Assembly: GCA_009859145.1 (NCBI GenBank)
Contig: VRVR01000036.1
Location: 136,604-200,603, forward strand
DNA from: Andalucia godoyi And28
Taxonomy: Eukaryota > Protista > Jakobida
Reading direction: 5' to 3'
DNA length: 64,000 nucleotides
Part shown: piece after piece, positions 8,600-54,017 of the stretch
Layout of the letters: each line of letters starts with the position of its first letter
Position numbering within the stretch: the first letter of the stretch is position 1
The notes under the pieces: generated by a model
What the model was told of the DNA's origin: nothing
The model's input: only the letters and a program-made list of their open reading frames with translations
The model's database searches: none
Translations under genes and position numbers: made by a program

Positions 8600-11500
8600 A
8601 TGGGACGCAAAGAGTTTGTATTGCTGCGTGCGCGTCCAGTGTGGGCGCGGCGTGATATGCTCCCTTTTGTTGTCGCCTACGTACTGAATCTTATTGGTAT
8701 GTGTCTGGCACCTCACTTTCTCACTTCAAAACGTTGTTTTCTCATGTTGCGTGCTTTCTCTTTGTCCTTGTCCTTGTCCTTGTCGTGATCTTGTTCTTTC
8801 TTCTTCCTTGATGATAGGCATCATTGCATTTCCTGATTGGGACTTTTGGTTATTGGTTGCGCTGGGATGCGAGGTTCTTTGCCATGTTTTGTCTCTCCTG
8901 TCAACACAGTGGTCGTTTGCTTGGGCCGTGAAGGCGTCATTCGATGTGGTTTCTGCATCTCAGATCTCCGTCGCAACGAACGTGTGGATCAAGTATGCAA
9001 AGAAGAATCAGGCGGTTTCTGTCACTTCAAAGTCCGAAATATGCCAAATTCAAATTTGCAAGCAGACTAGGCAGCGTTTCGTCTTGCATCATATGAGGAG
9101 ATTCACATATGACGACGACAAGAAGGTTTTCGCAAAGTCCGAGTTCCCTATTCATCTGCCGTCTTCCGAGTATGCCCATGCCAAAAGCCTGTCGATAGAG
9201 CGCCATCGTGGTCTCGCGGATTTATACGGGCCCAACAAGTTCACCATTCCGGTGCCTTCCTTTTGGCCTCTCTTCCAGCAACACCTGTTTGCACCATTTT
9301 TTGTGTTCCAACTGTTCTGCATTTCTCTGTGGTTCCTCGACGAGTACTGGTACTATTCGCTGTTCACGCTCGGCATGTTGGTGTTGATGGAATCGGTTGT
9401 TGTGAAGCAGAGACAAGGAAATCTGTCACAAATGCGTGCTGTTGCGCAAAAGCCTGCGTCGCTTGTGTATGTCCTTCGTGCTGCGCAATGGTCTCGTGTA
9501 TCGTGCGAAGAACTTGTTCCTGGCGACATTGTCTCAGTGCACCACGCTTCTCCTCTGTTCTCGTCTCCTCACAAAAGCCATGATAAACTGAATTGTCCTG
9601 CGGATTTGCTGTTGCTGGAGGGCGATGTTGTGGTTTCGGAAGCAATGCTCACTGGAGAGTCGAAGCCGCTTCTCAAGAAGGGGATCGAGACATCTTCCGT
9701 TTCCTTTGGAGAGCTCAGTGTTCAGAAGCACAGGGATCATATTCTTTTTGGTGGAACTACTGTGTTACGGTCCTTCCCTTCTAGCTGGTCCGGATCCATC
9801 CCGTCCTCTGCGAAGAAGAAATCGGGGGGAACAGCGTTGTCGTCCAGCGCTCCTGCCGTGTCTTCGGGCCCTGCCCCTGATGGCGGGTGCAAAGCGTATG
9901 TGTTGCGTACTGGATTCGAAACGGAGCAGGGAAAACTGATCCGCAAGATTGTCTTTGCATCCGACAAGGCAAAGATAGAATCTGCAGAGGCATATGTTTT
10001 CTTGTTGGTTCTGTTTTTATGCGCTCTTGTGGCCGCAGTATATCTCTTTAAGAAGAGCCTGGAGCTTGGCGAGAAGTCGTTTTACAACATCTCCCTGGAC
10101 TGCATTCTGATTCTTACCTCCGTTGTACCTCCGGAACTCCCCATGGAACTCAGTTTGGCAGTGAATCATTCGTTGATTCTTTTAGCGAAGGGGTCTCGCG
10201 TTTTCTGTACCGAGCCTTTCCGAATTCCCATGGCGGGAAAGGTCGACACCTGTGCTTTTGACAAGACCGGCACACTGACCTCGGATGATATGCGTGTTGA
10301 GCAGATTGTTCCCTCAACTCCTGACAAGTCGAAACGAGACGCAGAACGTATTTTGGCGGCTTGCCACTCCCTTGTATGGCTGGATTCCGAACAGCCTGTT
10401 GGAGATGCAATGGAGGTTGCTGCTTTCGATTTTGTGCGCTGGAAACGGCTGGACAAGGACTATTATTCTGCCGACTCGAAGGTAGAAAAGGAAAGCGTGA
10501 AGATTCTTCACCGCTTTGGGTTTGATGCTGACCTGCGGCGGATGTCTGTGTTCTGCGGTATTTCAAAGGCCGGTTCTGCAGACGTCGACGACTTCGCAAT
10601 TCTTACAAAAGGTGCGCCGGAAACCATGAGGGAAATGTTTAATCCTGCTTCCTTTGATGCAGAGAAATTTGATGTGATGTGCAACAAGTTTACTGCCAGT
10701 GGAGCCCGTGTTCTTGCGCTGGGCATGAAAGTTGTGGGTGACTCGGCGAATCTTTCACGCAGATACAAGAAAGCACTCCAAAAATCAAACCGGGAAGGGG
10801 CAATAACGAATTTTGTATTTTCCGCGCTGATTTCAAAGGCTTCCTGCTCGCTAGACAACGAAGATGAACACGAGGTGATCTGTGAAGAAGCCGATCTCCG
10901 ACAAGCTGCGGAGGCAGGGTTGAGTTTTGCAGGGTTTGTTCTGTTTGTATCGCCGTTGAAGAAGGATACCGCAGCCTCCATCGAGGAATTGATTTTATCT
11001 GGTCACGATTGCATCATGGTCACGGGTGATAATGCCAGGACTGCTACTGCGGTTGCAATCCAATGCGGTATTATTTCAAAATCGTCTGAAAAGGAAATAC
11101 TTCAGTTGTCGGTAACTTCCCCGGATGGCGCACAGTTTGGCTGGGTGGATCAGCAGGATGCGGCGATCAAATATTCGCTGTTTGGAGTTCCTCACAAGAA
11201 TTTCGAATTCGTCATTTCTGGAGAGGTTCTGCGGCATATGTCGAGTACTGAGGCTTCCAATGTTCTGAAGGAGTATGCTTCGAATTGTCATGTGTTTGCT
11301 CGAATGGCTCCGTCTCAAAAGGAAGATGTCATTCATGTCCTGCAAGCTGTAGACCGACAAATCCTGTTTTGCGGGGACGGCACCAACGATGTGGGTGCGT
11401 TGAAAGCTTCCCATGTCGGTATCGCGATTGTTTCGAAAGAGATGCCTGCGGACATCGGGGTTCCTCGTTTGCAGAATTTTGATGAGGAGACCATCCTCAA

Positions 11501-12521
11501 GGATCCGATGCTACGAAGAGCACGAGATCTCCAGAAGTTCCTTGATGGTCCTGTTGGAACACGCATGACCGATTCTCGCAAGGAACAAATCCGTGGAATG
11601 ATAACCCAAATTGAAGAGCTTCGCCAGGAAAACGAGAATTTTGTGGCGCAGCTGGGAGATGCGTCCATCGCCGCTCCGTTCACTTCAAAGCGCTCCTCCA
11701 TTCGATGCGCTCTGGACATTGTCAGGCAAGGTCGCTGTACTTTGGTTACCACGTTGCAGATCTATTCTATTTTGGCACTGCAGTGTCTTTTGAACGCGTA
11801 CACGCTATCCGTGCTGCACTTACAGGGTCTAAAGTTTGGCGATCGTCAAATGACTGTCGCTTCCATTTTTACTGCTTTGATGTTCTTCCTCATGTCGAGA
11901 CCCCAGCCTGTCGAGCGATTGTCTCGTGAGCGTCCCTTCAAGTCGATCTTCTCTCCGTATTTTATTCTTTCTGTGTTTGGGCAATTTTTGCTGCATCTCT
12001 CTTGTCTGTTGTTCTTGGTGTATGTACTGCTTCCTTCGTCTTTGCTGCACGCAGAGACTCCGCAAGATGTCGAGAATCTGCGAAAGGAGTTTTCTCCGAG
12101 CATCTTGAACACTGTTTTGTTTCCGTTTTCGTGCATTTTGCAAGTCGCCACTTTCACAATTAATTATCGCGGAGAACCGTTCATGCAGCCCCTCAAAAAG
12201 AACAAGGCTTTTATTGTTGTGTCCTCCATTGCTTTCTTCATGTTTCTCTCTGCGGCCACGGGATCTAACCCAGAATTCAACGAGCTTTTCCAACTTGTGG
12301 AGCTTCCCCGAGACATTCCGTTGTGGATTGACACTGCCACGGCAGATTCAAGCTTCATTGCCTCCTTATCAGTGCGTGTGTGGAGCGCAATGCTCAGATG
12401 GGACCTTACTTTGCCAAACGTCATATGTGGAGTGATCGTATTTGATGTTGCAGTGGCATTCTTCTGGGATCGCGTGCTTCGGCTCACTTATCGCCAACCC
12501 GTTGTCACAGCTCCTCAGTAA
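8600..12521 (+). CDS. ATP13A1: P5A-type ATPase (Spf1/ATP13A1); exons 8600-8696 and 8818-12521
   Basis: TGES, PPELPMEL, DKTGTLT, KGAPE and GDGTNDVGAL motifs. GTATGT...ATAG intron at 8697-8817 joins MGRKEFVLLR.. in frame to GIIAFPDW. Confidence 0.95.
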
Positions 12522-12612
12522 AACCTTTTCCGCTTCCTTCCTCTCAATATACACACACGCATAAAAAAATCCTCGGAAAAGCGTCTAGTATTCGCAGACT
12601 CTTTTGTCCTTT

Positions 12613-15282
12613 TCACCCTTTGTCTAGGGCTGGTAACGTCGAAGATCTCAGGAATGGATGTGGTGGCGCGGGAGCCGATCGAAAAGACTGTCGCTCGTCC
12701 CTGGATTTCGACAACGACGCCAGTTCCTTCTCATACACGACATCGCTCTTGTCTCCTGCATCTTTCAAAAGGTGCACGACATTCGCTGCACGTTGCTGCT
12801 CATTTCTGGCGACGACAGTGTTGTTTTCAGAAGTGGAAGAACGCACAAACAAGTGATTCTCCACGAAATTCAGTTTTCTTATCAACGAAACGTCTTCAAC
12901 CTGTTCTCCCAGCTTGGTGGATGAACGAAGAGTCGGAAGGACGATGCTCATCAGTTTGAAAACGCAAACGGCAATGATGCTAGCACCCACAATGGCAGAG
13001 CAACACAATACAATATGTGACACAGCACGGTCAAATGTGAACGGAATCACAGACAGTAAACTGATCAAAGAAGGCACCAAATGAACTCCAACTACATTTG
13101 CAACATCATCCAGATGCACAAACTGACGGCGAAATGTCCTTGTTACGAATCTGGATGCAGCCGCCGCCACACATCCAACAGCAAAAGCAATTGGGGGTCT
13201 GATGATGTGAGCACTTGCAGATACAGCAATTGCACCCGACAACAAGCTTTCGAAATCGCCGCTCGATATGAGAAATGCGCTGCAGGCAGCAATGACGGAG
13301 TTGACAACACAGCGGACCTGAAATTCAACGCCATGCAAAGACGACACAATGTACAAAATGAATACCAAAGCGAAGAATTGAAAAAGAAGGCCGATTCTGT
13401 TCAAGAAAACTGCAGAACGCAAGAAATTGACGGAAACCCCATTCGACGCCGCAGCGCCAGAAAGACTGGAGCTGCCGCTCAGAAGAATGTTCTCGTCGGC
13501 GAATGCAGCGCGACGAGCCTCATGACGCGGTCCCACGAAGAAAAGACCAACAACCGCAAATACGGAAGAGCAACAGTGACAAATGAGAGCACCACCGAAA
13601 TCCGTGAAATTCCAATTCGAAGACCACACATGCTCTTTGGACGAAACAGACGTGAAACCGAGAGTGTTAAGGGAGTTCAAGCTCGTGATGTACGGCCAGA
13701 AAAAGCGTATCAACACAGGAACCACAACAACACACTGCGTAAGATTGCAGATCACATAAACGAGCGGCCGTGTTCTGCCAGAAAAGGATACAGTGGAAAC
13801 AAAGACGCATTGAAGTGTGAACATCGAAAATACGGAGCAAACCAGATAGACATTCTCCGACAAAATGCCATTCACAATGCTGTTCAGAAGATCTGACGGA
13901 TCCGGATGAAGAGACACCGGAGGACGACTTAGAAATGACCAGAGCCCAGAGGCAATTGGGAACCCGAGAACCGCTGACGTCGCAAGCCCAGTGCCAGCGT
14001 TTACCAACACCCGACACGTAACAGTGTACATTTCTCCGGGGGGAGTCATTGCCAATTCTCGAAACAAGAATCCAATCGTGATAAAAACACCGAAAAGAAT
14101 CACAAAAATGAAGCTTCGAAGCCGCTGCTCCAGAAATGCCAGTGTACCCTTCATGTTCGCAATTTCCTCTGACTTGGAGGGAATAAAAACGTACAGCTTC
14201 GGATACTCATGCAGAACTTGCGAAACATTCTGATGAAGTAAGGAGTTCCAGTCGAGACCAGCAAATTCGTTCAGCAGCGTCTTGTTGGCATTCGAAAGGA
14301 CTTCATTCGCTGACGAAAACACCTGCTCTAAATCTGAATGCTGCTCGAAAAGCCAAGACAATGTTGCATTCAGGCTCGTGACCTGCGCCTCGCGAACCCG
14401 AAACTCCGCATACACAGTTGAATTGGCGAGCGACAAATTGCCGGCCATCTGCGAGGCTGTTGCTGCAAGCAATAGCAGCTGATCTCGCATGAACAAAAAA
14501 TCTGCGGTTTCGTTATTCGACAACCGAACATTCACCAAGTAATCCTTCAATGCGGTAATGTTCCTGTTCAGATCAACGACTGCGGATTCCAGAATCGTCG
14601 CACGTTTCTTCAACGCATCGATTTCGCGAGTATGAGTATCAATTGTTGGAATCAGAGAATTCAAGGTTTGAAGCGAATTCCAAAGACTGGAATTCACAGT
14701 CTTCACCTGCGTGTCGAGTGCAGCAACAGTCGAAGCATGGTCACTTTGCCATGTGTACAGACTGTCATTTAGGAGCAATATCGAGCTATTCAGAATGGCA
14801 ATGTCCGACGATAAACTTGCAAGGAGCGACAAAAACAACTGATCGTTGGTCAGCAACGCCGCCAAAGAAGCGCGTGCAAGAGTAATGTTGGAAGTAAGAT
14901 GCACGATTGTGTCGAAGGACGCAATCACACTCTCTGTTCGACTGATGATTGCCGTATCGGAAAACCGAAGCGCGGCAATGGCGGATAACAGGGCTGCATT
15001 TTGTGAAATTGCAGCCCCGAGAGAACTGTTAACAGACGCTAGTCGTCCATTTAGCGCAGAAATGGCAGCGTAAAACGCCGTGTCGTTTGCCCACAGCGAG
15101 GCCATCGTGGCATTTGTGGATAACATAAACGTCGTCAAGTTCGCTAACACAGTTTCTGCCGTGAGCGGAATGATCCTCTCTTCCTGTGCTGCAACCAGTC
15201 GAACCGGCAGAAAAAGACATCCAAAACCAATGACCAGAACAACACAAATCAGCGTGTTCGAACTGTCTGGCCTGCGCTGCAT
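12613..15282 (-). CDS. Ammonium transporter (Amt/Mep/Rh)-like protein with signal peptide and long N-terminal coiled-coil ectodomain
   Basis: DFGGALICHCCSS..VG..FVGPRH and LDDVANVVGVHLVP are the twin-His Amt motifs; about 11 hydrophobic segments; signal peptide ending VAA-QE. Confidence 0.85.
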   Translation of the reverse strand: MQRRPDSSNTLICVVLVIGFGCLFLPVRLVAAQEERIIPLTAETVLANLTTFMLSTNATMASLWANDTAFYAAISALNGRLASVNSSLGAAISQNAALLSAIAALRFSDTAIISRTESVIASFDTIVHLTSNITLARASLAALLTNDQLFLSLLASLSSDIAILNSSILLLNDSLYTWQSDHASTVAALDTQVKTVNSSLWNSLQTLNSLIPTIDTHTREIDALKKRATILESAVVDLNRNITALKDYLVNVRLSNNETADFLFMRDQLLLLAATASQMAGNLSLANSTVYAEFRVREAQVTSLNATLSWLFEQHSDLEQVFSSANEVLSNANKTLLNEFAGLDWNSLLHQNVSQVLHEYPKLYVFIPSKSEEIANMKGTLAFLEQRLRSFIFVILFGVFITIGFLFRELAMTPPGEMYTVTCRVLVNAGTGLATSAVLGFPIASGLWSFLSRPPVSLHPDPSDLLNSIVNGILSENVYLVCSVFSMFTLQCVFVSTVSFSGRTRPLVYVICNLTQCVVVVPVLIRFFWPYITSLNSLNTLGFTSVSSKEHVWSSNWNFTDFGGALICHCCSSVFAVVGLFFVGPRHEARRAAFADENILLSGSSSLSGAAASNGVSVNFLRSAVFLNRIGLLFQFFALVFILYIVSSLHGVEFQVRCVVNSVIAACSAFLISSGDFESLLSGAIAVSASAHIIRPPIAFAVGCVAAAASRFVTRTFRRQFVHLDDVANVVGVHLVPSLISLLSVIPFTFDRAVSHIVLCCSAIVGASIIAVCVFKLMSIVLPTLRSSTKLGEQVEDVSLIRKLNFVENHLFVRSSTSENNTVVARNEQQRAANVVHLLKDAGDKSDVVYEKELASLSKSRDERQSFRSAPAPPHPFLRSSTLPALDKG

Positions 15283-15328
15283 GTTTTAGTAGAACAGAGG
15301 CTCTGCACACAGGCAACTTCTGTCTGAA

Positions 15329-15391
15329 CTGCGGACTGCGGACTGCGGACTGCGGACTGCGGACTGCGGACTGCGGACTGCGGACTGCGGA
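15329..15391. repeat. Perfect heptamer tandem repeat (CTGCGGA)9
   Basis: Nine exact units, 47 bp upstream of the Amt-like ATG. Confidence 0.97.
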
Positions 15392-31191: not shown

Positions 31192-31537
31192 TGTATGAAC
31201 TTGAGCTAGCGACTGTGGTCCACAGGCTGTACGACCGCTCTGCGGCGAGCAGCCCAGCTCGTCCGCTTTCAAAGCCGAACCTTGTCAGATTTCTGTCGCT
31301 CCCCCAAGTTCGCAATCCAATGAGCATTTTTTTTTGGTCTTGAGGCGATAGGCGAGTGTGCACAACAATAAAGAAAATTGTCGACTCTTTTCGTCTTTGG
31401 AGCTGCCGGCCGTAGTGCTCCCCTTTCCCAGCGTAGACATCACAAACGGAATCAAAACACGCGAGGTTTGGATTGGAGGACACTGCAGCTTACTTGGTAG
31501 TCCGTACAGTACCTGGGTGCGCGCGCTCAACGCTTCC

Positions 31538-32509
31538 ATGCCGATGCGGCTCTCGTTCTACAAGCTGCATGCTCTTGGAAACTCCTATGTGTATATTCCG
31601 CTGCTGCACGACGAAGACGCCGAGGCTGCGATCGACTATCCGTCGTTTTCGAAGCATGTGTCATTGCCGACTACGGGCGTTGGATCCGATGGGCTGATTT
31701 TGCTGCGCAGACCGAGGCTTTCGTCTGTCAATTCGTGCTGGATGCGCATATTTAACAAGGATGGGTCGGAGGCGTTGAGTTGTGGAAACGGGCTTCGATG
31801 CGTCGCGTTTCTTCTGGATCATCTGCATCTGCATTGTTCTCCAGCCGTCGCCACCACCACCTCTTCTTGTCGCCCCTCTTCTCCTTCGTCTTGCTGTAAT
31901 GTTTTCAGAGTTGAGAACTCAGCAAGCCAAGTAAGCGAGTGCCGAGTGTTTCGGGACTCCGGCATGGTCCAGATCTCGATGAATGTGGTCTCTGTGCAGA
32001 ACCGCACAGGTCCTTTGAATGCATGGGCGGACAACCGAAACGACCGAGACATTCACAGTGGCAGCGAGAGCGAGGATGTGTTGGTAAATGTTGGGAACTT
32101 GCATTTAGTGCGCTTGTTTGCGGATGTGGACATGGAGGTGGATGATGAGTACTTGCGCACGGTAGGGTCGGAAGTGGAAAGAACTACGGATCGCAACTTC
32201 ATCTGTGTCTCGATACTTGGGCAGAAGCGTGTCAGAATGCGAGTTTGGGAACGCGGGTCCGGGATCACCCGAGCGTGTGGCACAGGTGCATGTGCAGGGG
32301 TTGCCGCGCTGTGCCACTCCTTACAGTTGTCGTATTCGATAGTGTCGGAGAATGACCGGAACGAACGGGGAGTCGAGGTCGTCATGGATGGCGGATCCGT
32401 GTGGATTCGGCTGGATCCACGTGGCAATGTGCTCATGACCGGTGAGGCAGTTATGATCTGCGAAGGTACCATCATTGTCCCGGACTCGTGTCTCCTTTCT
32501 CATTCGTAG
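31538..32509 (+). CDS. dapF: Diaminopimelate epimerase
   Basis: FYKLHALGNSY, MRIFNKDGSEALSCGNGLRC, NVGNLHLV and RVWERGSGITRACGTGAC; both catalytic Cys present. First ATG used, though the frame is open 60 codons further upstream. Confidence 0.92.
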   Translation: MPMRLSFYKLHALGNSYVYIPLLHDEDAEAAIDYPSFSKHVSLPTTGVGSDGLILLRRPRLSSVNSCWMRIFNKDGSEALSCGNGLRCVAFLLDHLHLHCSPAVATTTSSCRPSSPSSCCNVFRVENSASQVSECRVFRDSGMVQISMNVVSVQNRTGPLNAWADNRNDRDIHSGSESEDVLVNVGNLHLVRLFADVDMEVDDEYLRTVGSEVERTTDRNFICVSILGQKRVRMRVWERGSGITRACGTGACAGVAALCHSLQLSYSIVSENDRNERGVEVVMDGGSVWIRLDPRGNVLMTGEAVMICEGTIIVPDSCLLSHS

Positions 32510-35075: not shown

Positions 35076-37652
35076 TTACTTTTCGTCCATGACAATGACT
35101 CCTCGCCAGTCTGGGCCTGGAGGCTGTATTCTAAGGCGATCGCACTGTTTCATGTACATCATACTTAGAAAGTCCTCGTAGCCAGCCTGGATGTACTTTG
35201 CCGAGTCCATGTATCGTGAAAAGAGCTCGCGGGCAGCTGCAAACTCTCTTCTGTAGAAGGCGTTGAGCGCTTCTGTGAAGATTCCAGCAAGCGCAATTGC
35301 AGATTCTTTAGGGAATTCTTCTGGCGAAAGAATCTCGTACAGAAGAACAGGAGCTGTCAGGCCCACGACAATGACTTGCCCAACAGGACGCATCACAATT
35401 CCGTCCTTCTGTAGTCCTTCTAACGACCCCGCTTCACGAACCGTCTGTTCGGCAATAAGCGTGCGAGTGTGGAAGTGTTTGTTGAGCGACTCGAGACGAC
35501 TTGCAAGATTGGCATTCTTGCCAACAAGAGTGTACGCCATACGCTTGTGAGACCCAAAGTTCCCGACGAGACAATCACCGGTATTGAGACCAATGCGGCA
35601 GTCAAGCTGAGGAAGACCTCGCTGGGCCCACCCAACTTGCAGCTCTTTCAAGCGCTTTACACACTCGCCGACAGCATCAAGAGCCTTGCGAGGGTGGTTT
35701 TCGACGGACACAGGGGCGTTCCAAAACGCCATGATGCAATCGCCAATGAACTTGTCAATCGTTCCATCGTGCTTCATCACAATATCACTCATTTCACCCA
35801 GGAACTCTGCCATCACCTCGCAAAGCTCAGAGGGCGAAAGCGTCTCGGAAAGCTGCGTAAAGCCTTTCACATCCATGAACATCACGGTCAGACTCACATC
35901 GTCCATTCCAAGTCCAGTCGCAACGCGCTGCGTCAAGATAAGCTTCACCAAACTTGCGGGAACATAGAAGGAAAAAGCTTCAATTCCGGTTCTCATCACT
36001 TTGTAGGACTCGTTCAACGAGTGAATCTCGTGCAGATACACTCGGTTGCGCTTGCGAGTCGCGTTCGACCGGCCGTCTTCAAAGTTGAGGACGGCAAGCT
36101 GGCGCATGTTGTTCCCAAGCTTGTCGAGAGGCTTGACGATCCAATGGGCAAGCAGAACTCCGAGAAGTGTTGCAGCTACCACGATGCAAATGACGACAAT
36201 CAGCGTATTTCTGTTTGCTTCGTCGATACCCTGCATGATGGAGTCTCTGGATTTCATAACGACGAGCACATAATCTGCTTCAAGATACCGGATCCGGAAC
36301 GTCTCCAAAAAGTATTGGCCACTGCTGCCCGTGGTCAGAGTCACGGAAAGGCTGTCTGGCATACCAAGGAAAGAGCCATACTTAGAGCGCAGATAGTTGG
36401 TTGCATCCACAATTGGTGGCGCAATGTATCCGAGGTCTGTCGGCGACAGACGTGCAGTTCCGGTAGAGATGGTACCATGAGAGGTAGCGATAAGCAGTCC
36501 CGCATCCGTACGTTCAAAGATATACACATACCCCGAGGTAATAACGGACGACAGATAGGTTGACAGGGAATCCATGGAAAGACCCTTTCCAGCGACTCCA
36601 CGCAGTGTTCCGGTGCTGCTAGTATTTCCTGGAATTGCGAACGTCTGAATCTTCCAACCGCATGGCACATACAGCGAAGGCTCCGTAGTACCTCCGCCGT
36701 TTCGGAAGGAAACGGGGGCGATCGAAATCGAGCCATCCTTCTTTCCAAACACCTTTCCGTACAGATACCAATCCTTGGTCTTCACATTCCAGCCAGTGAG
36801 CGTAAGCATCGGAGGCAGCTCGCGCCCCTTCTTGGGTAGACTGTTGTCAAATGGCTGGAACGTAAGATTCGTCGTAGCGGACTTGATATTCCAGATCCAA
36901 GATGTGGAGTTCTCCTTGATCAACGAAACGACTTCGTTGTTTTCGTTTCCGAGAACATTCACAGTCGGCGCATCATCGCCGAAGGTGCTCATCTGGTTCA
37001 CCCACAGATTATCTGCAAGATCCAACATGTCATTGTACGACAAGACACTCATATTTCTGTTCTCAAAGTACGACTTGTCCTGCTTTGCTAGTTGTTCAAG
37101 CACCTCAAGCTTTCTTTGCACACGCTCACGAACTCGCATTGCAATCGTGGACCGCAGATCGGATGCCAGCGTTGTTACGGAGTCGGAGGCAGTGGAAAAA
37201 GACAACCACCAGCAAACGACTCCCGTGGTGACAATCGATGCCACCAGAACAAAAACGAAGAGAACGCGAATCGAAAACAGCTTTCTCATAAACGACTTGC
37301 ATCGCGACTCTTTCTTCCTAGTCCCTTGGGTCGGATCCTGTGCGCCTACTTGGTGCGGACCATCGGGGCGAGGGGACTTGGTTTCGTCTCCGGCAGATTG
37401 ATTCGCATTCACCGAATATCTGCGCTTCTTCATAGGGGTTCCGTAGAACGACGAGTTTGCCGATCGTGGGGACGAGAGCCCGTCGGACCGGAACGAAGAA
37501 GTCTCTTTCAAGTTGCCCTGGTTCTCCAAGTCATCAAACTGACCAATCACGGGAGTGTTGGGGGTTTGGATGCGGTTCGGATCAGAAACGCTACCCACGC
37601 TGTCCTTTCGTCCTTTTGAACCGCTGACGTCGACAGGAGTAACTTTCGTCAT
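35076..37652 (-). CDS. Receptor-type class III adenylate cyclase (TM-Cache-TM-HAMP-cyclase plus helical tail)
   Basis: Two TMs flanking a ~330-aa ectodomain; HAMP (IVKPLDKL...EIHSL); MFMDVKGFT, DKFIGDCIMAFW and AYTLVGKNANLASRLE. Confidence 0.92.
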   Translation of the reverse strand: MTKVTPVDVSGSKGRKDSVGSVSDPNRIQTPNTPVIGQFDDLENQGNLKETSSFRSDGLSSPRSANSSFYGTPMKKRRYSVNANQSAGDETKSPRPDGPHQVGAQDPTQGTRKKESRCKSFMRKLFSIRVLFVFVLVASIVTTGVVCWWLSFSTASDSVTTLASDLRSTIAMRVRERVQRKLEVLEQLAKQDKSYFENRNMSVLSYNDMLDLADNLWVNQMSTFGDDAPTVNVLGNENNEVVSLIKENSTSWIWNIKSATTNLTFQPFDNSLPKKGRELPPMLTLTGWNVKTKDWYLYGKVFGKKDGSISIAPVSFRNGGGTTEPSLYVPCGWKIQTFAIPGNTSSTGTLRGVAGKGLSMDSLSTYLSSVITSGYVYIFERTDAGLLIATSHGTISTGTARLSPTDLGYIAPPIVDATNYLRSKYGSFLGMPDSLSVTLTTGSSGQYFLETFRIRYLEADYVLVVMKSRDSIMQGIDEANRNTLIVVICIVVAATLLGVLLAHWIVKPLDKLGNNMRQLAVLNFEDGRSNATRKRNRVYLHEIHSLNESYKVMRTGIEAFSFYVPASLVKLILTQRVATGLGMDDVSLTVMFMDVKGFTQLSETLSPSELCEVMAEFLGEMSDIVMKHDGTIDKFIGDCIMAFWNAPVSVENHPRKALDAVGECVKRLKELQVGWAQRGLPQLDCRIGLNTGDCLVGNFGSHKRMAYTLVGKNANLASRLESLNKHFHTRTLIAEQTVREAGSLEGLQKDGIVMRPVGQVIVVGLTAPVLLYEILSPEEFPKESAIALAGIFTEALNAFYRREFAAARELFSRYMDSAKYIQAGYEDFLSMMYMKQCDRLRIQPPGPDWRGVIVMDEK

Positions 37653-39500: not shown

Positions 39501-42080
39501 TCAGGACTTCTTCTTTCCTGACTTGCTTGCTGTCTTCTTGTCCAACTGTGCAAGGACAGCATCGACGACGCCGTCCATGTCGGTGTCGTCGATCTGCAAG
39601 TCACTTGCAAAGACTTGCCGCAGAATCTCTGAAACCTTTCGCTTCTTTTTCGCAGTCCACTGAAGTCTTCTGCCAGTCATGACCGGGTTTCGGTTCGCCG
39701 GGTTCGCCACTGCGTTTCGCGGATTCATAGACGTTGCTCTCATTGTGCGACTGTATGGATCTCGCTGCGACTGGTCGGAGATCTGCAACACATCGGCTTC
39801 GTCAAGGTTTCTTTGGACATCGACCACTCCGAGTGCATTGACGCGGAGCTCAATTTCAGATCGAGAATCTGCGGCTCCCGAGTCCCAGTAGCTGGAGAAG
39901 GATTCCATGATGAACGCCATGATGATGTTCAAAAGAATGATTACTGCAACAATGTAGAATATGATAAAATACAAGCGGGCCCACTTGGACGTTACCGTCA
40001 CATAGCCAGACGTGACTGTATCCCAGTTGTTGAGCACTTGCAAGATGAACAGCGTTCCCATTGCGTCCTGGAAATTGTTCATTGAAATGGGATAGTAGTC
40101 AGACTGGCCAAAGGGATCGGCCTGAAGAGCAACATTGTTCTTATCGATGAGACCAGCAAAGGCCTGCATTCCAACCATTGCAAACACGTAAAAGCAAGAA
40201 AACTGAATTGCACCGTAGGAAATGAGCGCCGGATACACCTGGAAAAGGGTATTCAGGATCTTTGCATAGTCATCAAAGATACTGATGACTCGAATGCACC
40301 GGCATGATCGCATCAGCACAAGGATACGCAGACTCAGATCGTCACCAGCATTCACATTCTTCAAGACGATGACGATCAGCGAGATGAAGATCAGAATCGC
40401 ATCGAACTTGTTCCAAGACGATGCCCAGAATTTCTTGAATCCATAGCCATAAATGCGCAGAGACACCTCGAGCAAGGTCAAGGAAAACACAATCGCGAAC
40501 CAAATGTCAAAGATCTCATTGTGCGAGGCCGCATCCTTGGATGACCCGTTGATAAGTAGATTGTAATACACAACCACAAACCCAATGTTCAAAACTATCA
40601 GTGCGTCCCAAAAATACTCAAAATAAACGTGTCGCACAGCTTTGATGAGCGCCTGAGAAGGTCGTGAGAAGTAGATGAACGGAATAAGGAAGACAAAGCA
40701 CGGCTCCACGCTTTGCTTCGGACGGATGAACACATTGAGCGCATCGACAATAAGCGAAAACCGCGCAAAATTCAATCGCCCTTCTCCGTCCACATCCATT
40801 GCCCTAAAAATGATATCGGTCTTTGATGCTTCGTATCGACCGCGGAGCACATACATCAATTCGAGAAATCGCTCTTCCGTAATGCCGTTCTTGTCCTCGA
40901 CAAACGTACGACTGGAATCAGTATTTGAAGCAGCACCACGATCCATGTTCTTTAGCTCGGTAGGCAGCGGTGGCGGCGACAGCTGCTCTGTTTGTCCGTG
41001 TCCGTGTCCGTGTCCGTGTCCGTGTCCTCGTCCTCTCCATCGCCCTGCTTCATCCCCGCCACCTCCACCACCATCATCCCCCTCATCTCCAGAATCCGAG
41101 TTTTCGCCGTCCGATTCCACGTCTTGAATATCCGTCTCTCCAAACATGATTTGCGAACCGCTTCCCAAGATATCGGATTCTTGTTCGTTCTCCGCATCGA
41201 GAGACGTCAGCACCCGGTATGCCAGCATGAGCGCAGTCCTCTGCCGCTTGACCTGCGACTTCACTTCGATCGACAGAAAGTTTCGATAACTGTCATACGC
41301 GGTACCGAGCAACAGAGTCATCAGAAAATACATGTTGATTATCAGGTAAGAAAAAAAGATCAACCCATAGAGCCTGTCCTCCTGGTACGCAGGGATCATG
41401 ACTGTTGGAAAGTTGGAGTTTGTTAAACAGACAAGCATGGAGAACAAGCCGTCGAGAAAGCTCTCGAAGTTTTGATCTCCCTCCTCCGTACCAAAGAACA
41501 GGACGGTACAGAAAATCGTGTAGAGAATCAACACAAAGAACACAAGTCCCAATAGCTTCAAGATTGCAGGAAGCGTCCGTCGAATGTCCCGGACACAAGC
41601 CCGAAGCGTGTCGAAGTGAAAGATCAGATAGTACGGTCGGAACCACCGCGTGATGCGGACCGGCACACCACTCCAAAACATAAGGACGTCCAAGAAATTC
41701 AAGCTCAACAATGCAAGATACACCTGGTTCCATCGATCCGTCTTGAAAATAAACTCGTACCGAGAATTAGTCAAATGCAAAAGAACCAAATCAACAGAGT
41801 ATATGCTTAAAAATAGCGTCTCTAATGCCAGCGGCAGGTGCTTTGATACTGCCACAGTCGCGGGAGGCTCAATGTATGCGAGCAACAGGTGCAGAATGGT
41901 AGCCAGTCGAAAGAGAAATTGAACCCACTTGAATCGGTAAATATTGTAAATCTTCAAGCTTGCATAGTCAGTGTTGTGCCGAAAGTCTCTCACGTTTCGC
42001 GCATCTTCCACGAACGTCGCCGCCTGCAAAATACGAAGTTTGTGCAAATCCGACAGATTCGACAATAGAGATTCCCTCAT
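39501..42080 (-). CDS. TPCN: Two-pore channel
   Basis: Two 6-TM Shaker-like halves; filters LTNSNFP and QVLNNWD; N-terminal LQAATFVEDA; EF-hand-like linker. Confidence 0.92.
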   Translation of the reverse strand: MRESLLSNLSDLHKLRILQAATFVEDARNVRDFRHNTDYASLKIYNIYRFKWVQFLFRLATILHLLLAYIEPPATVAVSKHLPLALETLFLSIYSVDLVLLHLTNSRYEFIFKTDRWNQVYLALLSLNFLDVLMFWSGVPVRITRWFRPYYLIFHFDTLRACVRDIRRTLPAILKLLGLVFFVLILYTIFCTVLFFGTEEGDQNFESFLDGLFSMLVCLTNSNFPTVMIPAYQEDRLYGLIFFSYLIINMYFLMTLLLGTAYDSYRNFLSIEVKSQVKRQRTALMLAYRVLTSLDAENEQESDILGSGSQIMFGETDIQDVESDGENSDSGDEGDDGGGGGGDEAGRWRGRGHGHGHGHGHGQTEQLSPPPLPTELKNMDRGAASNTDSSRTFVEDKNGITEERFLELMYVLRGRYEASKTDIIFRAMDVDGEGRLNFARFSLIVDALNVFIRPKQSVEPCFVFLIPFIYFSRPSQALIKAVRHVYFEYFWDALIVLNIGFVVVYYNLLINGSSKDAASHNEIFDIWFAIVFSLTLLEVSLRIYGYGFKKFWASSWNKFDAILIFISLIVIVLKNVNAGDDLSLRILVLMRSCRCIRVISIFDDYAKILNTLFQVYPALISYGAIQFSCFYVFAMVGMQAFAGLIDKNNVALQADPFGQSDYYPISMNNFQDAMGTLFILQVLNNWDTVTSGYVTVTSKWARLYFIIFYIVAVIILLNIIMAFIMESFSSYWDSGAADSRSEIELRVNALGVVDVQRNLDEADVLQISDQSQRDPYSRTMRATSMNPRNAVANPANRNPVMTGRRLQWTAKKKRKVSEILRQVFASDLQIDDTDMDGVVDAVLAQLDKKTASKSGKKKS

Positions 42081-42535
42081 TCCAAGAAAAGCATCATTCG
42101 CTCTCCGCACTCAGAATCTTCTCCCCGCGCCCACGGATAACAACCCCTTGGAGAGTGCACTGAAAAAAATTTAATAAAAATATCAATTACCTAAGCAAAT
42201 GAATAATATGTCGAGTTCGTGATTCAGCACGTTTTTGACGAAAAAGGACTTTCAGCATTCGAAAAACAAACGTAAGGAAAGAGGAGAGAGAGAGAGGGGG
42301 GAGGGGGGGGCGGGGGGACTGTTGTACACGCTGACATACTGACACGCCGCTGACATTTCTGTACTGCTTGTCCTCCGACAATTGTCCGATGTGTTGTCTG
42401 GCGTACTGTACGAGCGTTGCGGAATTTACCTTTATGGTGCAACGTGCACCTGAAGTGGAGGAGGAAGAAGAAGAAGAAGAAAAGAGAGAGAGAGAGAGAG
42501 AGAAACAAAGGAAAGGCAGCAGCAATGTGTGACTT

Positions 42536-47241: not shown

Positions 47242-48057
47242 ATGTTCGACGTCATTGTGAATCCACGGTTTTGTGCAGATGGTCCGAGTGCAAAAGTCGA
47301 CATTCGATCCGGCCGAACGTCGTTTCATGCCTGGACCGACAGCTCCGATCCTGTCATGTTCCGAACGGCAGTGTACACCGTACGAGCCGAAGTGGCCGTG
47401 CAGGTGAATCAGCAGTCTGAAACGAGTTTGTTCACGCACACCAGTGTTTCGAGTATGAAGATTTCTCTGAAACTCACAGTCGTCAGCGCGGACACTGGGT
47501 TCCCCGTACCCAATGCGATCGAGTCTCGCAGTTGCCGCACCGCAGCGATCGCGGAATCATTCTTTGAACCCTCAGTCTTTCCGCTTGGTCCGCTGATTGG
47601 AGAAACGGCCCCGTTTTCGTTCGGAAAGCTGTACTCTCATCTTTCCCGAAGATTCCCACATCAGCGGTTTCGACTCTGCATCAGCGCGTTCAGCGAAGTT
47701 CCATTACCAGGCCACCTTTCTCCTCCACCGCCTAGTTCTTCCGACACAACATTCTCTCTCAGGACTGGCCGATGCTTCCAAAACACGCATCTGTTCAGCA
47801 TTGTGTCACCACCTTTTCTGGTCAAGTCGAAGAAAATCGTCTCTGCTCATGTACCGCGTTCTCTGTTCGCACAGCATGTGCTCCACGCGCACCTCGAGCC
47901 GGTCTACGTAGACTGTGCAGACAGCAGCAGTGAAACATCCGGTGGCAGCTGCGAGGAATGGGCGCTACCAGAGATGGACTATAGGCTATCGGAGGAGTTC
48001 TTGACTGCATTCTGGATGCAAGATTGCTTTCTTCAGTCCATAAATCTCTGTGTATAG
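47242..48057 (+). CDS. Uncharacterised protein, tandem paralog 1 (candidate Ig-fold DNA-binding domain)
   Basis: Shares AKVDIRSGRTSF..W, FRTAVYT, GETAPFSFGKLYSHLSRR.PHQRFRLCISAF and SP.F.VKSKK with 48952-49935. Confidence 0.8.
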   Translation: MFDVIVNPRFCADGPSAKVDIRSGRTSFHAWTDSSDPVMFRTAVYTVRAEVAVQVNQQSETSLFTHTSVSSMKISLKLTVVSADTGFPVPNAIESRSCRTAAIAESFFEPSVFPLGPLIGETAPFSFGKLYSHLSRRFPHQRFRLCISAFSEVPLPGHLSPPPPSSSDTTFSLRTGRCFQNTHLFSIVSPPFLVKSKKIVSAHVPRSLFAQHVLHAHLEPVYVDCADSSSETSGGSCEEWALPEMDYRLSEEFLTAFWMQDCFLQSINLCV

Positions 48058-48951
48058 CTCTCCCAAGCATAGCAAATAAAAAATCGTCATGAATTTTTTT
48101 CTCTTCTTCTTCTTTTTCTTCAAAAGAAAAACACACCCAGAACATAGCAAAGGGGAACGTGATTCCCCGTCAATTTTTTGTGCAATGTCTCAACTCGCTG
48201 CTTTTGCACGTTGCGTGGTCATCATGACAACGTTCCAGACTCGCTACCCGGGGTCTGCTCGCCTCTCATGGAGCGACATGTGAGCAGCGCCGGAGGGCAA
48301 ACATGCGGTCATTACTTGATGATTGTCCTAATGGATCTAAATGGGGATTATAAATATAGCAGTGTGTTCCGTCAACTTCCGAGCCACGCCTTTCCCCACC
48401 AGCCTTCAACGCCGGCAGACCGATCTATTATTGAGCACTGCTCTTCCCCTAAACTCGCCGAAATGGCATAATGATTCCGCCGATTTGCCTGCATGCAGAT
48501 GCATTTCAGTTTCTAGTAGTACCTCCGCATTCATTTGAACCCACCGTTGCCTGTTTAAGATTTTCCCGTCGCTTTCACGAAAGACTTCTGGTTCCACTGT
48601 CGACGCACGACCGATGGCTCGGCGAGTAACAGAATGCACTACATCTCCGGCCGTTTCACGGACACGTCGTTGTTTGCAGCTTGCAAAAGCCCGGTAGCGT
48701 GTGGAACGGATACCGGTTCATTGTGCAGAATACCGTTTTCCTGCCGAAGAAAGTTATGGTGCAAGCTGGCGCACCCTCTTGCACTGGAGGTGGGAAAAAA
48801 GCCTATTTTTATCTGTAGATGTCCTGGTTGGTTGGTACGACTTCTAATGTGTTGTTCGCTTTCATGCATAGCATTCTTATCCGCCGTTCGAAAAACAACA
48901 TTTCTGTTCCCTGCTTTCCCAGAGCAAAAGGGTGGATTTGTTTGGACGGTA

Positions 48952-49935
48952 ATGTTTGAAGTCATTGAAAACACAGAGCTGTTTTCCGGAAGCTTGCGGT
49001 TGGCTGCAAAGGTGGACATTCGTTCCGGCCGAACATCATTTCGTGAATGGACGAGTAAAACCAATACAGACCGTGTGCTGTTCCGGACTGCTGTTTACAC
49101 ACTTCGTGCACAAATATCCGTGCAGCAGAACGGCTGCCAGACGGCTCCACATGCCGATCGACCATTTGGGTTGCTGATGTGTGCCATGAACATGCGTGTG
49201 CGTCTGAAGGTCGACGTAATTGACAGCGATACCGGTTGCATAGTCCCCAGTGCTATCGAACACCGCGGCGGTCGCACAGCTCAGATAGAATCCGTCTTCC
49301 AGCCCTCATCCTTTCCTTTTGGCCCCATGGTCGGAGAAACGGCCCCGTTTTCGTTCGGAAAGCTGTACTCTCATCTTTCTCGAAGATCCCCGCATCAGCG
49401 GTTTCGACTTTGCATCAGCGCGTTCTGCGAAGTTCCTTCGTGCTATGTGGATGTGCATACTCTGCATCATCAGGAGCCAAGCTTTCGCTTCGCCGCGGAT
49501 TCGCCGACGTCTTCCGACGCAAAGGGCTCATCTCTCGGTGGCTGTTACCAGGATGTGCATTTATTCAGTGCACTCTCTCCTCAGTTTGCGGTGAAATCGA
49601 AGAAGCCAGTTCGTGTCTTCTCCTTTCCACCGAGTGCCGCTCTCGATAGTGGGCTAGAGCATTCTTGTAGATCGATCGGCACACTTAGAGCGTACTCGAG
49701 CCCCCTGTCGAACTGTCATTCCCTCGAAGAACTGATCGCTTCCCCTGCTGCTGCGCCGATTTCCGCATGCAGCGAAACGGCGATCGAGACTTGCAACTTC
49801 AAGCTTTCGGATCAGTTTTTGTCAGAATTTTGGGCAGAGGACTGGGGAAACTGTCAGTCGCTCCTTCGGTTCGTCGATCTTGCCATACTCCCCACCGTTG
49901 GTTCTGCTACTGCAATGTTGGCGAATAACTCGTAA
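48952..49935 (+). CDS. Uncharacterised protein, tandem paralog 2
   Basis: Starts at MFEVI, aligning with MFDVI of paralog 1; same conserved blocks. Confidence 0.8.
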   Translation: MFEVIENTELFSGSLRLAAKVDIRSGRTSFREWTSKTNTDRVLFRTAVYTLRAQISVQQNGCQTAPHADRPFGLLMCAMNMRVRLKVDVIDSDTGCIVPSAIEHRGGRTAQIESVFQPSSFPFGPMVGETAPFSFGKLYSHLSRRSPHQRFRLCISAFCEVPSCYVDVHTLHHQEPSFRFAADSPTSSDAKGSSLGGCYQDVHLFSALSPQFAVKSKKPVRVFSFPPSAALDSGLEHSCRSIGTLRAYSSPLSNCHSLEELIASPAAAPISACSETAIETCNFKLSDQFLSEFWAEDWGNCQSLLRFVDLAILPTVGSATAMLANNS

Positions 49936-52307: not shown

Positions 52308-54017
52308 TTACAGCTCAAAGGTTTCGGTGTGGACATCGAAATGGACTGATTCAAAAGGAGGGATTCCGATCCCCGAGAGAGCGACGGAGGATGAACGAAC
52401 GGAGCTGAGCATTGCGAACGGTCCACACGCCAAGACAGCCACACGAACTGTCTCCGTTCCGTTCTTGTTCGGGTCGGATGGTGCAGGATCTGCAATTGCG
52501 GTTCGCGCGGCATTCTTCAGTACTTCAGGAATCGCAAGTCGACCTGGGCCTACATGGACTTCGATATCCACGCCAACTTTTTTTGCTATGAGCGTCTGAA
52601 GCTTGTCCATCTCTTCCTTTGCGATCTCCGATGTCCTCGTGAACTGCAGTCGGACTCGGAGAATTGCAGGCAGCGACCAGCGCAATGCATGATCATTTGC
52701 AACTTGGCTGGCTGCATTCGAGGACTTCCGGGGCCCAGGCAATGCAAGCTGCTCCAACACGGAGATTGCGAATGGGACTTCGCGGCCTTGCAACGACCAG
52801 CAGAGGTTGACGACCACCGGTGACGCAGTCGCGGTTTCACTCTTTTCCACATCCATGTCAAAGTTTGTTGTCGTCACTGCCGTCGATGTTGGTGACACTG
52901 GTGACGCAGGCGACGATGACGACGACTGTGCGTTGTCGTACTTGTGAGTGTTCGATGCAACGATCCAGTTCCAGAAGCTGAGCATTGGGGTGATTCCCAC
53001 ACCACCGGCAATGAGGGAAAAATTGGTGTACCTCGCGAGATCAAGAGCCGAGGATCCAAACGGGCCGTCGACCGCGACCTTTGGTCCTTCGCCGCGGGCA
53101 TTGACTTCAAGCTTGGTCATATATTGCGTATACTGGCCGAACTCCCGGATGAAAAACCCAAGGATGATAGCACTGCTGCCCCCCTTTCGATGGGCGCTCT
53201 GTTCCTGATCAAAATTCGGCTGCTCCAGAGGCCTCGTGTAGGCAATTGAGAAAGGGTGCATTTGCGACCACTTCAGCGACGGCACGTACAGATACACGTA
53301 CTGCCCCGGCTCTGCATATGCATTTCCAGCATTCTGCACCAAGATTTCCCACTTGACAACCCGCTGTCCTGGCTTTCCAGAGACAACGGTCGCGGAAAGA
53401 ATCGTTGCATTTCGTCGAACTCCAACGAAGATCCGCGCAACCCAGTCTGCAGCGTACAGAATCACAGGAACGATGCACCGCAAAATCAGCCCACCTGCAT
53501 CTTCATGAAGAATCGCAAAGATGTACGCAATAGGAGCCAAGACGTAGTGTGACTTCATGAATCCTTCATATAAATTTCGTCGAATCCAGGCCAACGACGT
53601 GAGGAACAGCATGAGAAACGCAGTCATCGCAATCAGTCCGGCTACGTTGGAAAACTGATTCATGTCGTTCCCAAAGACCAGGAAGAAGAAATGGATCACA
53701 GTGAGGATAACTGTCGCATATGAGATCCATCTGTGGAACTTAATCGCTCGTTCAAAGGGAACGTTCAGAATAACGAGAAGCGGCGAAACTCGCTTGGTGA
53801 CCGGAATAAGCAAGAATGCCATGTTCCACTGGATGGGCCCACCCGTCGAGCGTCCTCCGTCGCCGCGACGAAGCGACTGAGCACACAACGCAAGCTCAAC
53901 GCCGATAAACGCCAGCAGAAACATCACGTCACCAAAAGACACATTCGGGAATATTGCATGGATTGGCTTGTGCATCCTGCGCAACACAGGATACAACACT
54001 CGAGGAATCAAGTGCAT
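52308..54017 (-). CDS. Ferric reductase / NOX-like transmembrane oxidoreductase
   Basis: Heme His pairs (KFHRW..IHFF; KSHY..ILHE), HPFS, VAVDGPFG, IAGGVGITP, ACGP and C-terminal E.FEL. Confidence 0.92.
   Translation of the reverse strand: MHLIPRVLYPVLRRMHKPIHAIFPNVSFGDVMFLLAFIGVELALCAQSLRRGDGGRSTGGPIQWNMAFLLIPVTKRVSPLLVILNVPFERAIKFHRWISYATVILTVIHFFFLVFGNDMNQFSNVAGLIAMTAFLMLFLTSLAWIRRNLYEGFMKSHYVLAPIAYIFAILHEDAGGLILRCIVPVILYAADWVARIFVGVRRNATILSATVVSGKPGQRVVKWEILVQNAGNAYAEPGQYVYLYVPSLKWSQMHPFSIAYTRPLEQPNFDQEQSAHRKGGSSAIILGFFIREFGQYTQYMTKLEVNARGEGPKVAVDGPFGSSALDLARYTNFSLIAGGVGITPMLSFWNWIVASNTHKYDNAQSSSSSPASPVSPTSTAVTTTNFDMDVEKSETATASPVVVNLCWSLQGREVPFAISVLEQLALPGPRKSSNAASQVANDHALRWSLPAILRVRLQFTRTSEIAKEEMDKLQTLIAKKVGVDIEVHVGPGRLAIPEVLKNAARTAIADPAPSDPNKNGTETVRVAVLACGPFAMLSSVRSSSVALSGIGIPPFESVHFDVHTETFEL

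Follow-up and report, generated by a model that had tools for sequence, protein, structure and literature searches.

A divergent Amt/Mep/Rh-family protein of Andalucia godoyi with a predicted glycosylation-site-rich helical ectodomain

What kind of protein could result when a long, heptad-patterned segment rich in glycosylation sites runs directly into the first transmembrane helix of an ammonium transporter (Amt) fold? This question is raised by a 64,000-nucleotide stretch of the jakobid Andalucia godoyi And28 (GCA_009859145.1, contig VRVR01000036.1, positions 136,604 to 200,603), here called the window, and in particular by one reverse-strand open reading frame (ORF) encoding a protein of 889 residues. 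A preliminary description of the DNA had pointed to positions 14120-15186, which correspond to residues 33-388 of this protein, as an extracellular stalk on a possibly non-transporting Amt base. The reading that we favor, to which we give about an even chance of being right, is that a helical ectodomain rich in predicted glycosylation sites is mounted on a divergent Amt body, which would act as an ammonium-binding receptor or a slow conductor.

The family of the membrane domain can be established by several comparisons. The superfamily profile PF00909 (TC 1.A.11) matches with 60.7 bits against a gathering score of 23.2 (E = 1.4e-16), and the best sequence matches in the PDB, obtained with phmmer, are Ks-Amt5 (6eu6, E = 1.8e-4) followed by Sd-Amt1. 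A family hidden Markov model (HMM), built from AmtB (NC_000913.3) and 113 retrieved Amts, gives 45 bits for the protein compared to 372 bits for AmtB, while hhalign assigns a probability of 98.5% to the match with the family alignment. Only 24 of the 67 near-invariant family positions are retained, with the twin histidines among them, and the profile of the 'amt' subfamily, TIGR00836, gives 47.9 bits, far below its cut-off of 343.3. The full-length AlphaFold model has a mean predicted local distance difference test (pLDDT) score of 61.8, which rises to about 90 in the transmembrane (TM) helices. It shows eleven TM helices with the pseudo-twofold relation of TM1-5 to TM6-10, and Foldseek compares it with Sd-Amt1, Ks-Amt5, Af-Amt1, AmtB, Rh50, and RhCG at target-normalised TM-scores of 0.58-0.71, those for Amt structures being 0.64-0.71. 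In addition, the distribution of loop charges, examined by hand on the AmtB alignment, fits an N-out, C-in topology. Collectively, we can conclude that the Amt assignment is solid and that the domain is extremely divergent.

The pore could be examined by placing the residues on AmtB, the numbering of which was verified against the AmtB sequence. Both pore histidines are kept, as had been noticed at the outset: H569 in ICHCC and H734 in GVHLV align as the twin histidines in every alignment made. Asp725-Asp726, the counterparts of D309/D310, precede H734, and Phe107 and Trp148 are retained as F488 (within FSMFTLQ) and W529, respectively. Three residues ahead of the Asp160 equivalent, at the outer mouth of the pore, an additional sequon, N558-F-T, is found. 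The region of TM6 is very different. The cytoplasmic loop between TM5 and TM6 has about 40 residues, compared to the usual number of about 15-21, and the TM6 signature GWFGFNAGS (Trp212, Phe215, and Ser219) is not retained. Four alignments conflict there; hhalign pairs FILY with AILY of AmtB, leaves a 6-residue gap over WFGFNG, and then pairs VVNSVIAA with FVNTVVAT, whereas in the other alignments the signature positions are taken by S, A, L, H, or N. The preliminary description had called both gate motifs, FQxxFA and WFGWxGFN, unrecognizable. This holds for the latter, on which the four alignments disagree, whereas the former is degenerate and its Phe107 can still be aligned with F488. The canonical S1 site and phenylalanine gate are thus incomplete, with W529, D561, and F488 present and the TM6 motif absent.

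The cytoplasmic side of the domain is also atypical. The ExxGxD motif of the C-terminal region (CTR), as defined in PMC4852598, is degenerate (GEQVED), with the Asp alone remaining, and the conserved Arg of the CTR is retained as R786; mutations of this motif inactivate transporters (PMC4852598). A fragmentary relative, P0008, has the intact motif E-E-Q-G-L-D. The tail of approximately 80-100 residues that follows the Amt domain (residues 786-889) matches no Pfam or NCBIfam domain, and a C-terminal transducer module of the kind found in ammonium receptors (histidine kinase, GGDEF, and others) is absent. In the alignments, two glutamates line the cytoplasmic exit of the pore. E409 occupies the position of AmtB Tyr32 and Sd-Amt1 Glu29, with F405 matching Sd-Amt1 Phe25, and E678 occupies the exit position of AmtB Ser263 and Sd-Amt1 Asn269, which is also Glu in the sole relative. 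Sensor Amts carry an N1/N2 signature, Q-x6-E-x15-N-x2-D-[FT]-x54-60-T-x2-[ST] (PMC11152129). At its six positions Q-E-N-D-T-S, located by the family HMM, the protein reads T402, E409, V425, N428, F494, and T497; only the Glu is kept as such, and the final residue is of the S/T type. The protein is, in sum, a member of the Amt/Mep/Rh superfamily that lies outside the criteria for both canonical transporters and described sensors. It is atypical enough that a lost or altered transport function, which had been suggested beforehand, is plausible.

The part that precedes the Amt domain begins with a signal-type N-terminus, MQRRPDSSNT-LICVVLVIGFGCLFLPV-RLVAA|QEE, with two arginines in the n-region, a hydrophobic core starting at residue 11 and ending at residue 27 (17-22 residues), and a good -3/-1 candidate cleavage site at VAA|QEE. 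Our reading of the sequence agrees here with the preliminary description, which had named the same VAA-QE site. The full-length AlphaFold model shows a low-confidence helix at residues 7-30, and the core may be long enough for an uncleaved anchor.

The following segment was described beforehand as heptad-rich and dominated by A, L, and S, with 15 N-x-S/T sequons, and as running straight into TM1, all of which is borne out. In residues 33-388, L, A, S, T, and N account for 16.6, 12.9, 11.8, 8.4, and 7.9% of the residues, respectively, charged residues for 15%, and only four Pro and five Gly are present. Hydrophobic power at a period of 3.5 residues is 4.17 compared to 0.22 in shuffled sequences, an approximately 19-fold excess that none of 2000 shuffles reaches, and the heptad pattern extends over residues 33-392. 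The same periodicity analysis gave no hendecad (3.67-residue) signal, and no internal sequence repeats were found in the segment. Unbroken heptad runs occupy residues 43-125, 126-184, and 185-264 (83, 59, and 80 residues), with shorter runs up to residue 392, and 70-80% of the a and d positions are L, I, V, A, M, or F. In the register-tracking pass, the core consists of L/I/V at a and L/A at d. When registers were fitted separately for each helix, their phases were 4, 0, 0, 4, 3, 0, 0, and 3; of the five shifts in phase, four amount to +3 or +4, and the phase is identical on both sides of a helix break at residues 143-146. The long 3.5-residue periodicity together with the all-helical AlphaFold prediction supports a coiled-coil nature of the segment, a point on which the preliminary description had depended. 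A dibasic site, K-K-R, is located mid-stalk at residues 225-227.

The sequons provide the argument for the location of this segment. Their number is exactly 15, compared to 5.5 ± 2.0 in a free shuffle and 6.5 ± 2.0 in a shuffle that preserves the composition at each heptad position (P about 1e-4), while the other 497 residues of the protein contain three, with 3.4 expected. In 13 of the 15, the Asn is at heptad position e or g, within the motif L-N-x-[ST]-L. The confinement of the excess to the ectodomain argues for selection for predicted N-glycosylation sites and hence for lumenal or extracellular exposure.

Predictions of the shape are less concordant. In the full-length monomer model, helices are found at residues 42-103, 110-142, 147-179, 183-252, 258-284, 292-314, and 316-341, followed by a Pro-containing linker at residues 343-370 and then by a single helix, residues 371-410, that extends into TM1. 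The stalk-only model, made with no alignment (pLDDT 62 and a predicted TM-score of 0.43), shows helices at residues 42-143, 147-255, and 260-342 and two short ones. Common to both runs are breaks near residues 144-146 (T-N-D-Q) and 254-259 (S-N-N-E-T), which resemble helix caps and split the segment into three helices of about 100 residues each. When the stalk-only model was compared with the PDB by Foldseek, Smc arms (TM-score 0.53), a chemoreceptor hairpin, ClyA-type bundles, and a designed three-helix bundle were returned; these are mostly antiparallel long-helix structures, and the similarity is generic (E > 0.01 and TM-score ≤ 0.53). A comparison with the viral library returned generic coiled coils, and no match in either library had an E-value below 0.005. 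We do not take the matches to ClyA-type toxins as a sign of homology.

Three arrangements of the ectodomain can be weighed on these data, for which sequence register and models point in opposing directions, so that its length may be near 45-50 nm or near 15 nm. The arrangement that comes closest to an even chance, although it falls a little short of it, is a fold-back of every chain on itself, with helices of about 100 residues packed antiparallel into a bundle of approximately 15 nm; the shared cap-like breaks, the similar helix lengths, and the antiparallel Foldseek analogues speak for it, whereas the phase conserved across residues 143-146 would be a natural property of the second arrangement. 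The latter is the stalk of the preliminary description, said there to be tens of nm long: once the signal has been cleaved, approximately 300-340 residues of each chain would wind in parallel around the three-fold axis of the trimer as one continuous three-stranded coiled coil, with a length of about 45-50 nm and the role of a surface filament or tether. The long in-phase heptad runs are in its favor, as are the stutter- or stammer-like character of four of the five other phase shifts, the near absence of Pro and Gly, none of which is at a phase shift, and the helix predicted to be continuous into TM1. TM1 takes part in the trimer interface in AmtB structures, which would also suit a three-stranded stalk. 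On the other hand, the two capping-box-like breaks shared by the monomer runs and the similar helix lengths are a hallmark of fold-back bundles, the stalk-only model resembles antiparallel structures, and 13 of the 15 sequon asparagines would lie at the flanking e and g positions. Furthermore, a core with I/V/L at a and L at d does not fit the rule for trimers, since a beta-branched residue or Leu at a combined with Leu at d is not trimer-typical. We regard this parallel rope as possible, somewhat less so than the bundle. The third arrangement, which appears unlikely, is that the N-terminus remains uncleaved as a twelfth helix, TM0, and that residues 33-392 form a giant extracytosolic loop tethered to the membrane on both sides, which would fold into an antiparallel two-stranded hairpin about 25 nm long and turn near Pro212. 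The hydrophobic core of 17-22 residues is long for a cleaved signal, Pro212 is the exact midpoint of residues 33-392, and the best Foldseek analogues are antiparallel hairpins (the Smc arm and the chemoreceptor cytoplasmic domain); in addition, a TM0 is located at the interface between subunits in RhCG (PMC10794816). These points are opposed by the good cleavage site at VAA|QEE, by a helix that is unbroken at Pro212 in either AlphaFold run, and by heptad discontinuities that are not mirror-symmetric around residue 212.

The overall architecture can be proposed as follows. A single intron-free gene encodes the protein, which would be a type-I-like polytopic membrane protein, residues 1-32 of which would serve as a signal or anchor for the endoplasmic reticulum. 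As is known from the family, the Amt body would be a homotrimer with its N-termini outside and its C-termini inside, so that three predicted ectodomains would stand on the extracytosolic face, at the cell surface or in an organelle lumen. The helix of residues 371-392 would pass directly into TM1 as a rigid junction, and the resulting three-fold, helical, heavily glycosylated assembly would project at least 15 nm. The pore, with W529, D561, F488, H569, H734, and D725/D726, could still be able to recruit and deprotonate ammonium, while it would be devoid of the activation switch in the CTR and of the second Phe of the gate, and its exit would be acidic. The losses of the gate signature and ExxGxD, together with this acidic exit, would point to binding or sensing of ammonium, or to slow conduction under atypical regulation, more than to bulk assimilatory uptake. 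The ectodomain may play the role of a trimer clamp, a spacer or glycan shield, or a ligand-binding part.

This proposal has to be weighed against the idea that the Amt body is an ordinary working transporter, decorated by the ectodomain as a glycocalyx, protease shield, or cell-wall spacer with no part in signaling. We hold this to be tenable but rather doubtful. It could explain why the twin histidines and the equivalents of Asp160, Trp148, Phe107, and D309/D310 survive extreme divergence, and yeast Mep2 is still functional without its extracellular N-terminus, so that N-terminal parts can be dispensable for transport (PMC4852598). It is difficult to reconcile with the loss of GWFGFN (W212/F215) and of ExxGxD, with a TIGR00836 score so far below 343, with the small share of near-invariant positions kept, and with Glu at both exit-lining positions. 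Several points nevertheless count against a receptor or slow conductor. The retained twin histidines, Asp, and Trp could equally mean ongoing transport, and the N1/N2 signature of ammonium receptors is not recovered. The structural support is qualified as well: the alignment given to AlphaFold consisted only of bacterial sensor Amts and the P0008 fragment, and the Foldseek match is partly circular because this input was made of Amts; pLDDT is 41-72 in TM6-TM7, near which the input alignment conflicts with the others, and 55-75 in the ectodomain, a low confidence. Finally, a single full-length member was found, and the fusion is seen in this one sequence. A stronger proposal, that the Amt trimer has become the membrane base for a coiled-coil receptor or filament of three-fold symmetry outside the cell, the stalk of which is coupled to the pore or tail through the stalk-TM1 helix, is one we consider improbable. 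If it were true, coupling of a ligand, contact, or force on the stalk would define a new class of transceptor or surface receptor, for which no counterpart has been described.

It could also be asked whether two products are made, in which case Met377, located 15 residues ahead of TM1, would be the start of the physiological Amt, and the 376 codons before it would be a 5′ leader or part of a separate isoform. A start at Met377 would yield an Amt with a normal short N-terminus. However, at this GC content a stop-free run of 376 in-frame codons has a chance probability of about 1e-8, and the same frame carries heptads, sequon enrichment, and a signal peptide, all of them signals at the protein level. 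Any translation that begins at Met1 must also continue into the Amt part, and the gene was deposited as the full ORF. In our judgement, this makes the two-product explanation very improbable. An in-frame stop codon lies one codon 5′ of Met1, and both GC content and GC content at third codon positions are continuous across the junction between the stalk and Amt parts. Codon usage bias in the ORF is weak and supports nothing beyond this lack of a discontinuity. The identical 889-residue sequence is present as an annotated protein, for which EukProt is the only source, and is a singleton at 90% identity.

The architecture was not recognized when the sequence was first read, and it was found nowhere else by sequence, profile, metagenome, and literature searches. 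A word-indexed search returned the protein itself or nothing, whether the query was the full sequence or just the Amt part. An exhaustive HMMER scan of 1.84 billion cluster representatives (E ≤ 0.001) gave three matches: the protein itself, P0008, and P0009, the last of which is a fragment of a bacterial Amt-kinase. No homologue of the stalk was present among these representatives. P0008, a truncated protein of 254 residues with 32% identity over residues 668-808, is the sole relative of the Amt part, for which the nearest relatives with a name are bacterial sensor Amts. P0008/P0010 are encoded on two metagenome contigs of the Joint Genome Institute (JGI), Ga0456364_0021238 and Ga0456364_0113004 from sample 3300042934. 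Both contigs break off 20 bases 5′ of the fragment, and its reading frame is still open where the sequence stops. A metagenome scan with a two-sequence profile gave five bacterial Amts, four of which are histidine-kinase fusions and all of which have TM1 near the N-terminus, and a further profile search gave bacterial Amts alone, mostly histidine-kinase fusions. Literature searches gave no account of an Amt with an extracellular coiled coil, and N-terminal fused modules of Amts are mentioned in passing, with no detail (PMC11152129). The window also contains, at approximately 63174-64000 (+), a gene for a Cys-rich protein with CxxC repeats, which resembles by tblastx a gene for a Cys-rich repeat, multi-TM protein (L001:2660-4440, -) adjoining P0008/P0010 on the metagenome contig. 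This resemblance hints that the contig of the relative comes from a related organism.

Table 1. Positions of the Amt-ectodomain gene and its parts in the window
Feature	Residues	Position	Strand	Basis or remark
Amt-ectodomain ORF	1-889	12613..15282	-	889 residues and stop, single open frame
Signal peptide or signal anchor (candidate)	1-32	15187..15282	-	read from sequence
Heptad-repeat all-helical segment	33-370	14173..15186	-	periodicity, register, sequon enrichment, predicted helices
Membrane-proximal heptad helix	371-392	14107..14172	-	predicted continuous with TM1; contains Met377
Divergent 11-TM Amt/Mep/Rh domain	393-785	12928..14106	-	Pfam, PDB phmmer, HMM/hhalign, Foldseek
Asp561, equivalent to AmtB Asp160	561	13600..13602	-	alignments
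His569, equivalent to AmtB His168, first twin His	569	13576..13578	-	all alignments
Enlarged TM5-TM6 loop and TM6	587-651	13330..13524	-	GWFGFNAGS deleted or replaced
His734, equivalent to AmtB His318, second twin His	734	13081..13083	-	all alignments
Cytosolic C-terminal region	786-889	12616..12927	-	conserved Arg (R786) kept

The surroundings of the gene show some features of their own. Nine perfect copies of the heptamer ACTGCGG are found at 15328-15391, 46 bp upstream of the ATG of the Amt gene, in its presumed 5′ leader or promoter. On the other side, the stop codon is 91 bp from that of the convergent ORF of a P5-type ATPase (8694-12521, +; gap 12521-12613), so that the 3′ untranslated regions of the two genes must overlap or be very short. 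The window as a whole has a eukaryotic gene content that includes a gamma-tubulin complex protein, eIF2A, a PIF1 helicase, and the P5-type ATPase, as well as an adenylate cyclase, a two-pore-type channel, a ferric reductase/NOX, and DapF. Its ORFs are long and uninterrupted, the strand changes every 1-3 genes, which speaks against a kinetoplastid, and GC content is 46-53%; an Rfam scan of the window gave no match. Seven annotated proteins of the window are found in EukProt only and are singletons at 90% identity, and three ORF models taken from the first ATG are not in the protein collection, for which the deposited gene models probably differ.

No paralogue of the Amt-ectodomain gene is located within the 64-kb window. 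Tandem paralogues of another kind, with no Pfam match, are present at 47242-48057 and 48634-49935 (+) and share long blocks such as AKVDIRSGRTSF and GETAPFSFGKLYSHLSRR. The adenylate/guanylate cyclase at 35076-37652 (-; PF00211) is of the receptor type, with a TM helix, an extracytosolic region of about 400 residues bearing sequons, a second TM helix, and then the cyclase. The diaminopimelate epimerase at 31358-32509 (+) has no obvious targeting presequence, the channel at 39501-42110 (-) has two Ion_trans repeats and an EF-hand and is of the two-pore-channel type, and the oxidase at 52308-54017 (-) is of the ferric-reductase/NOX type. These three genes could serve as markers in taxonomic placement.

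Among known systems, sensor Amts are the best matches in both sequence and structure; they include Ks-Amt5 (6eu6), Sd-Amt1 (8qj3, 8qj4, and 8qpf), and the Amt-histidine-kinase fusions of Bacillota (Firmicutes) and other bacteria. As in these proteins, the Amt body carries a further, non-transport module, and Glu at the Glu29 position is preceded by Phe four residues before. A bulkier residue at the exit position of Sd-Amt1 Asn269, here E678, is another shared trait. In contrast, the module of the sensors is a C-terminal cytoplasmic kinase or cyclase, whereas that of the present protein is N-terminal, extracytosolic, and structural; the sensors conserve the N1/N2 signature, the phenylalanine gate, and the CTR motif, and the present protein is eukaryotic. 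The N-terminus of Mep2 and plant AMT1 is likewise extracytosolic, and Mep2 is N-glycosylated at Asn4 (PMC4852598). Its extended N-terminus contacts the neighboring subunit and is thought to stabilize the trimer (PMC4852598). However, the extension there has 20-25 residues and one glycan, compared to about 360 residues and 15 sequons here, and Mep2 and AMT1 keep the phenylalanine gate, the S1 site, and ExxGxD. Their similarity to the protein is below that of the bacterial sensors (Foldseek ranks 15-16). The Rh glycoproteins RhCG and RhAG have the same superfamily fold, and the TM0 of RhCG at the subunit interface (PMC10794816) would parallel an uncleaved anchor in the present protein. They have neither a large ectodomain nor an S1 site, and the match to them is weaker than to Amts.

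Long helical ectodomains anchored in the membrane are familiar from class A macrophage scavenger receptors, laminin, the stalks of trimeric autotransporters, VSG, HpHbR, and GARP. With these, the protein shares heptad helices outside the membrane, N-glycans as predicted from its sequons, and possible roles as a spacer, receptor, or coat; HMMER detected no similarity to them in sequence, and Foldseek, with the PDB and viral libraries as targets, none of significance in structure. To our knowledge, such ectodomains are anchored by a single-pass helix, glycosylphosphatidylinositol, or a beta-barrel and never by a channel fold, and all characterized additions to Amt/Mep/Rh proteins are cytoplasmic, namely PII binding, kinase or cyclase modules, and phospho-regulated tails. 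The protein is an orphan, present in one organism and one truncated metagenomic relative, and its wider importance will depend on family size and experiments. It could be used to test how far a pore can diverge while keeping the twin histidines, the phenylalanine gate and CTR switch being gone and two glutamates standing at the exit. If the proposal is true, a large glycosylated extracellular module fused helically to TM1 would represent a use of the stable trimeric Amt fold different from that in the transporters and sensors described above.

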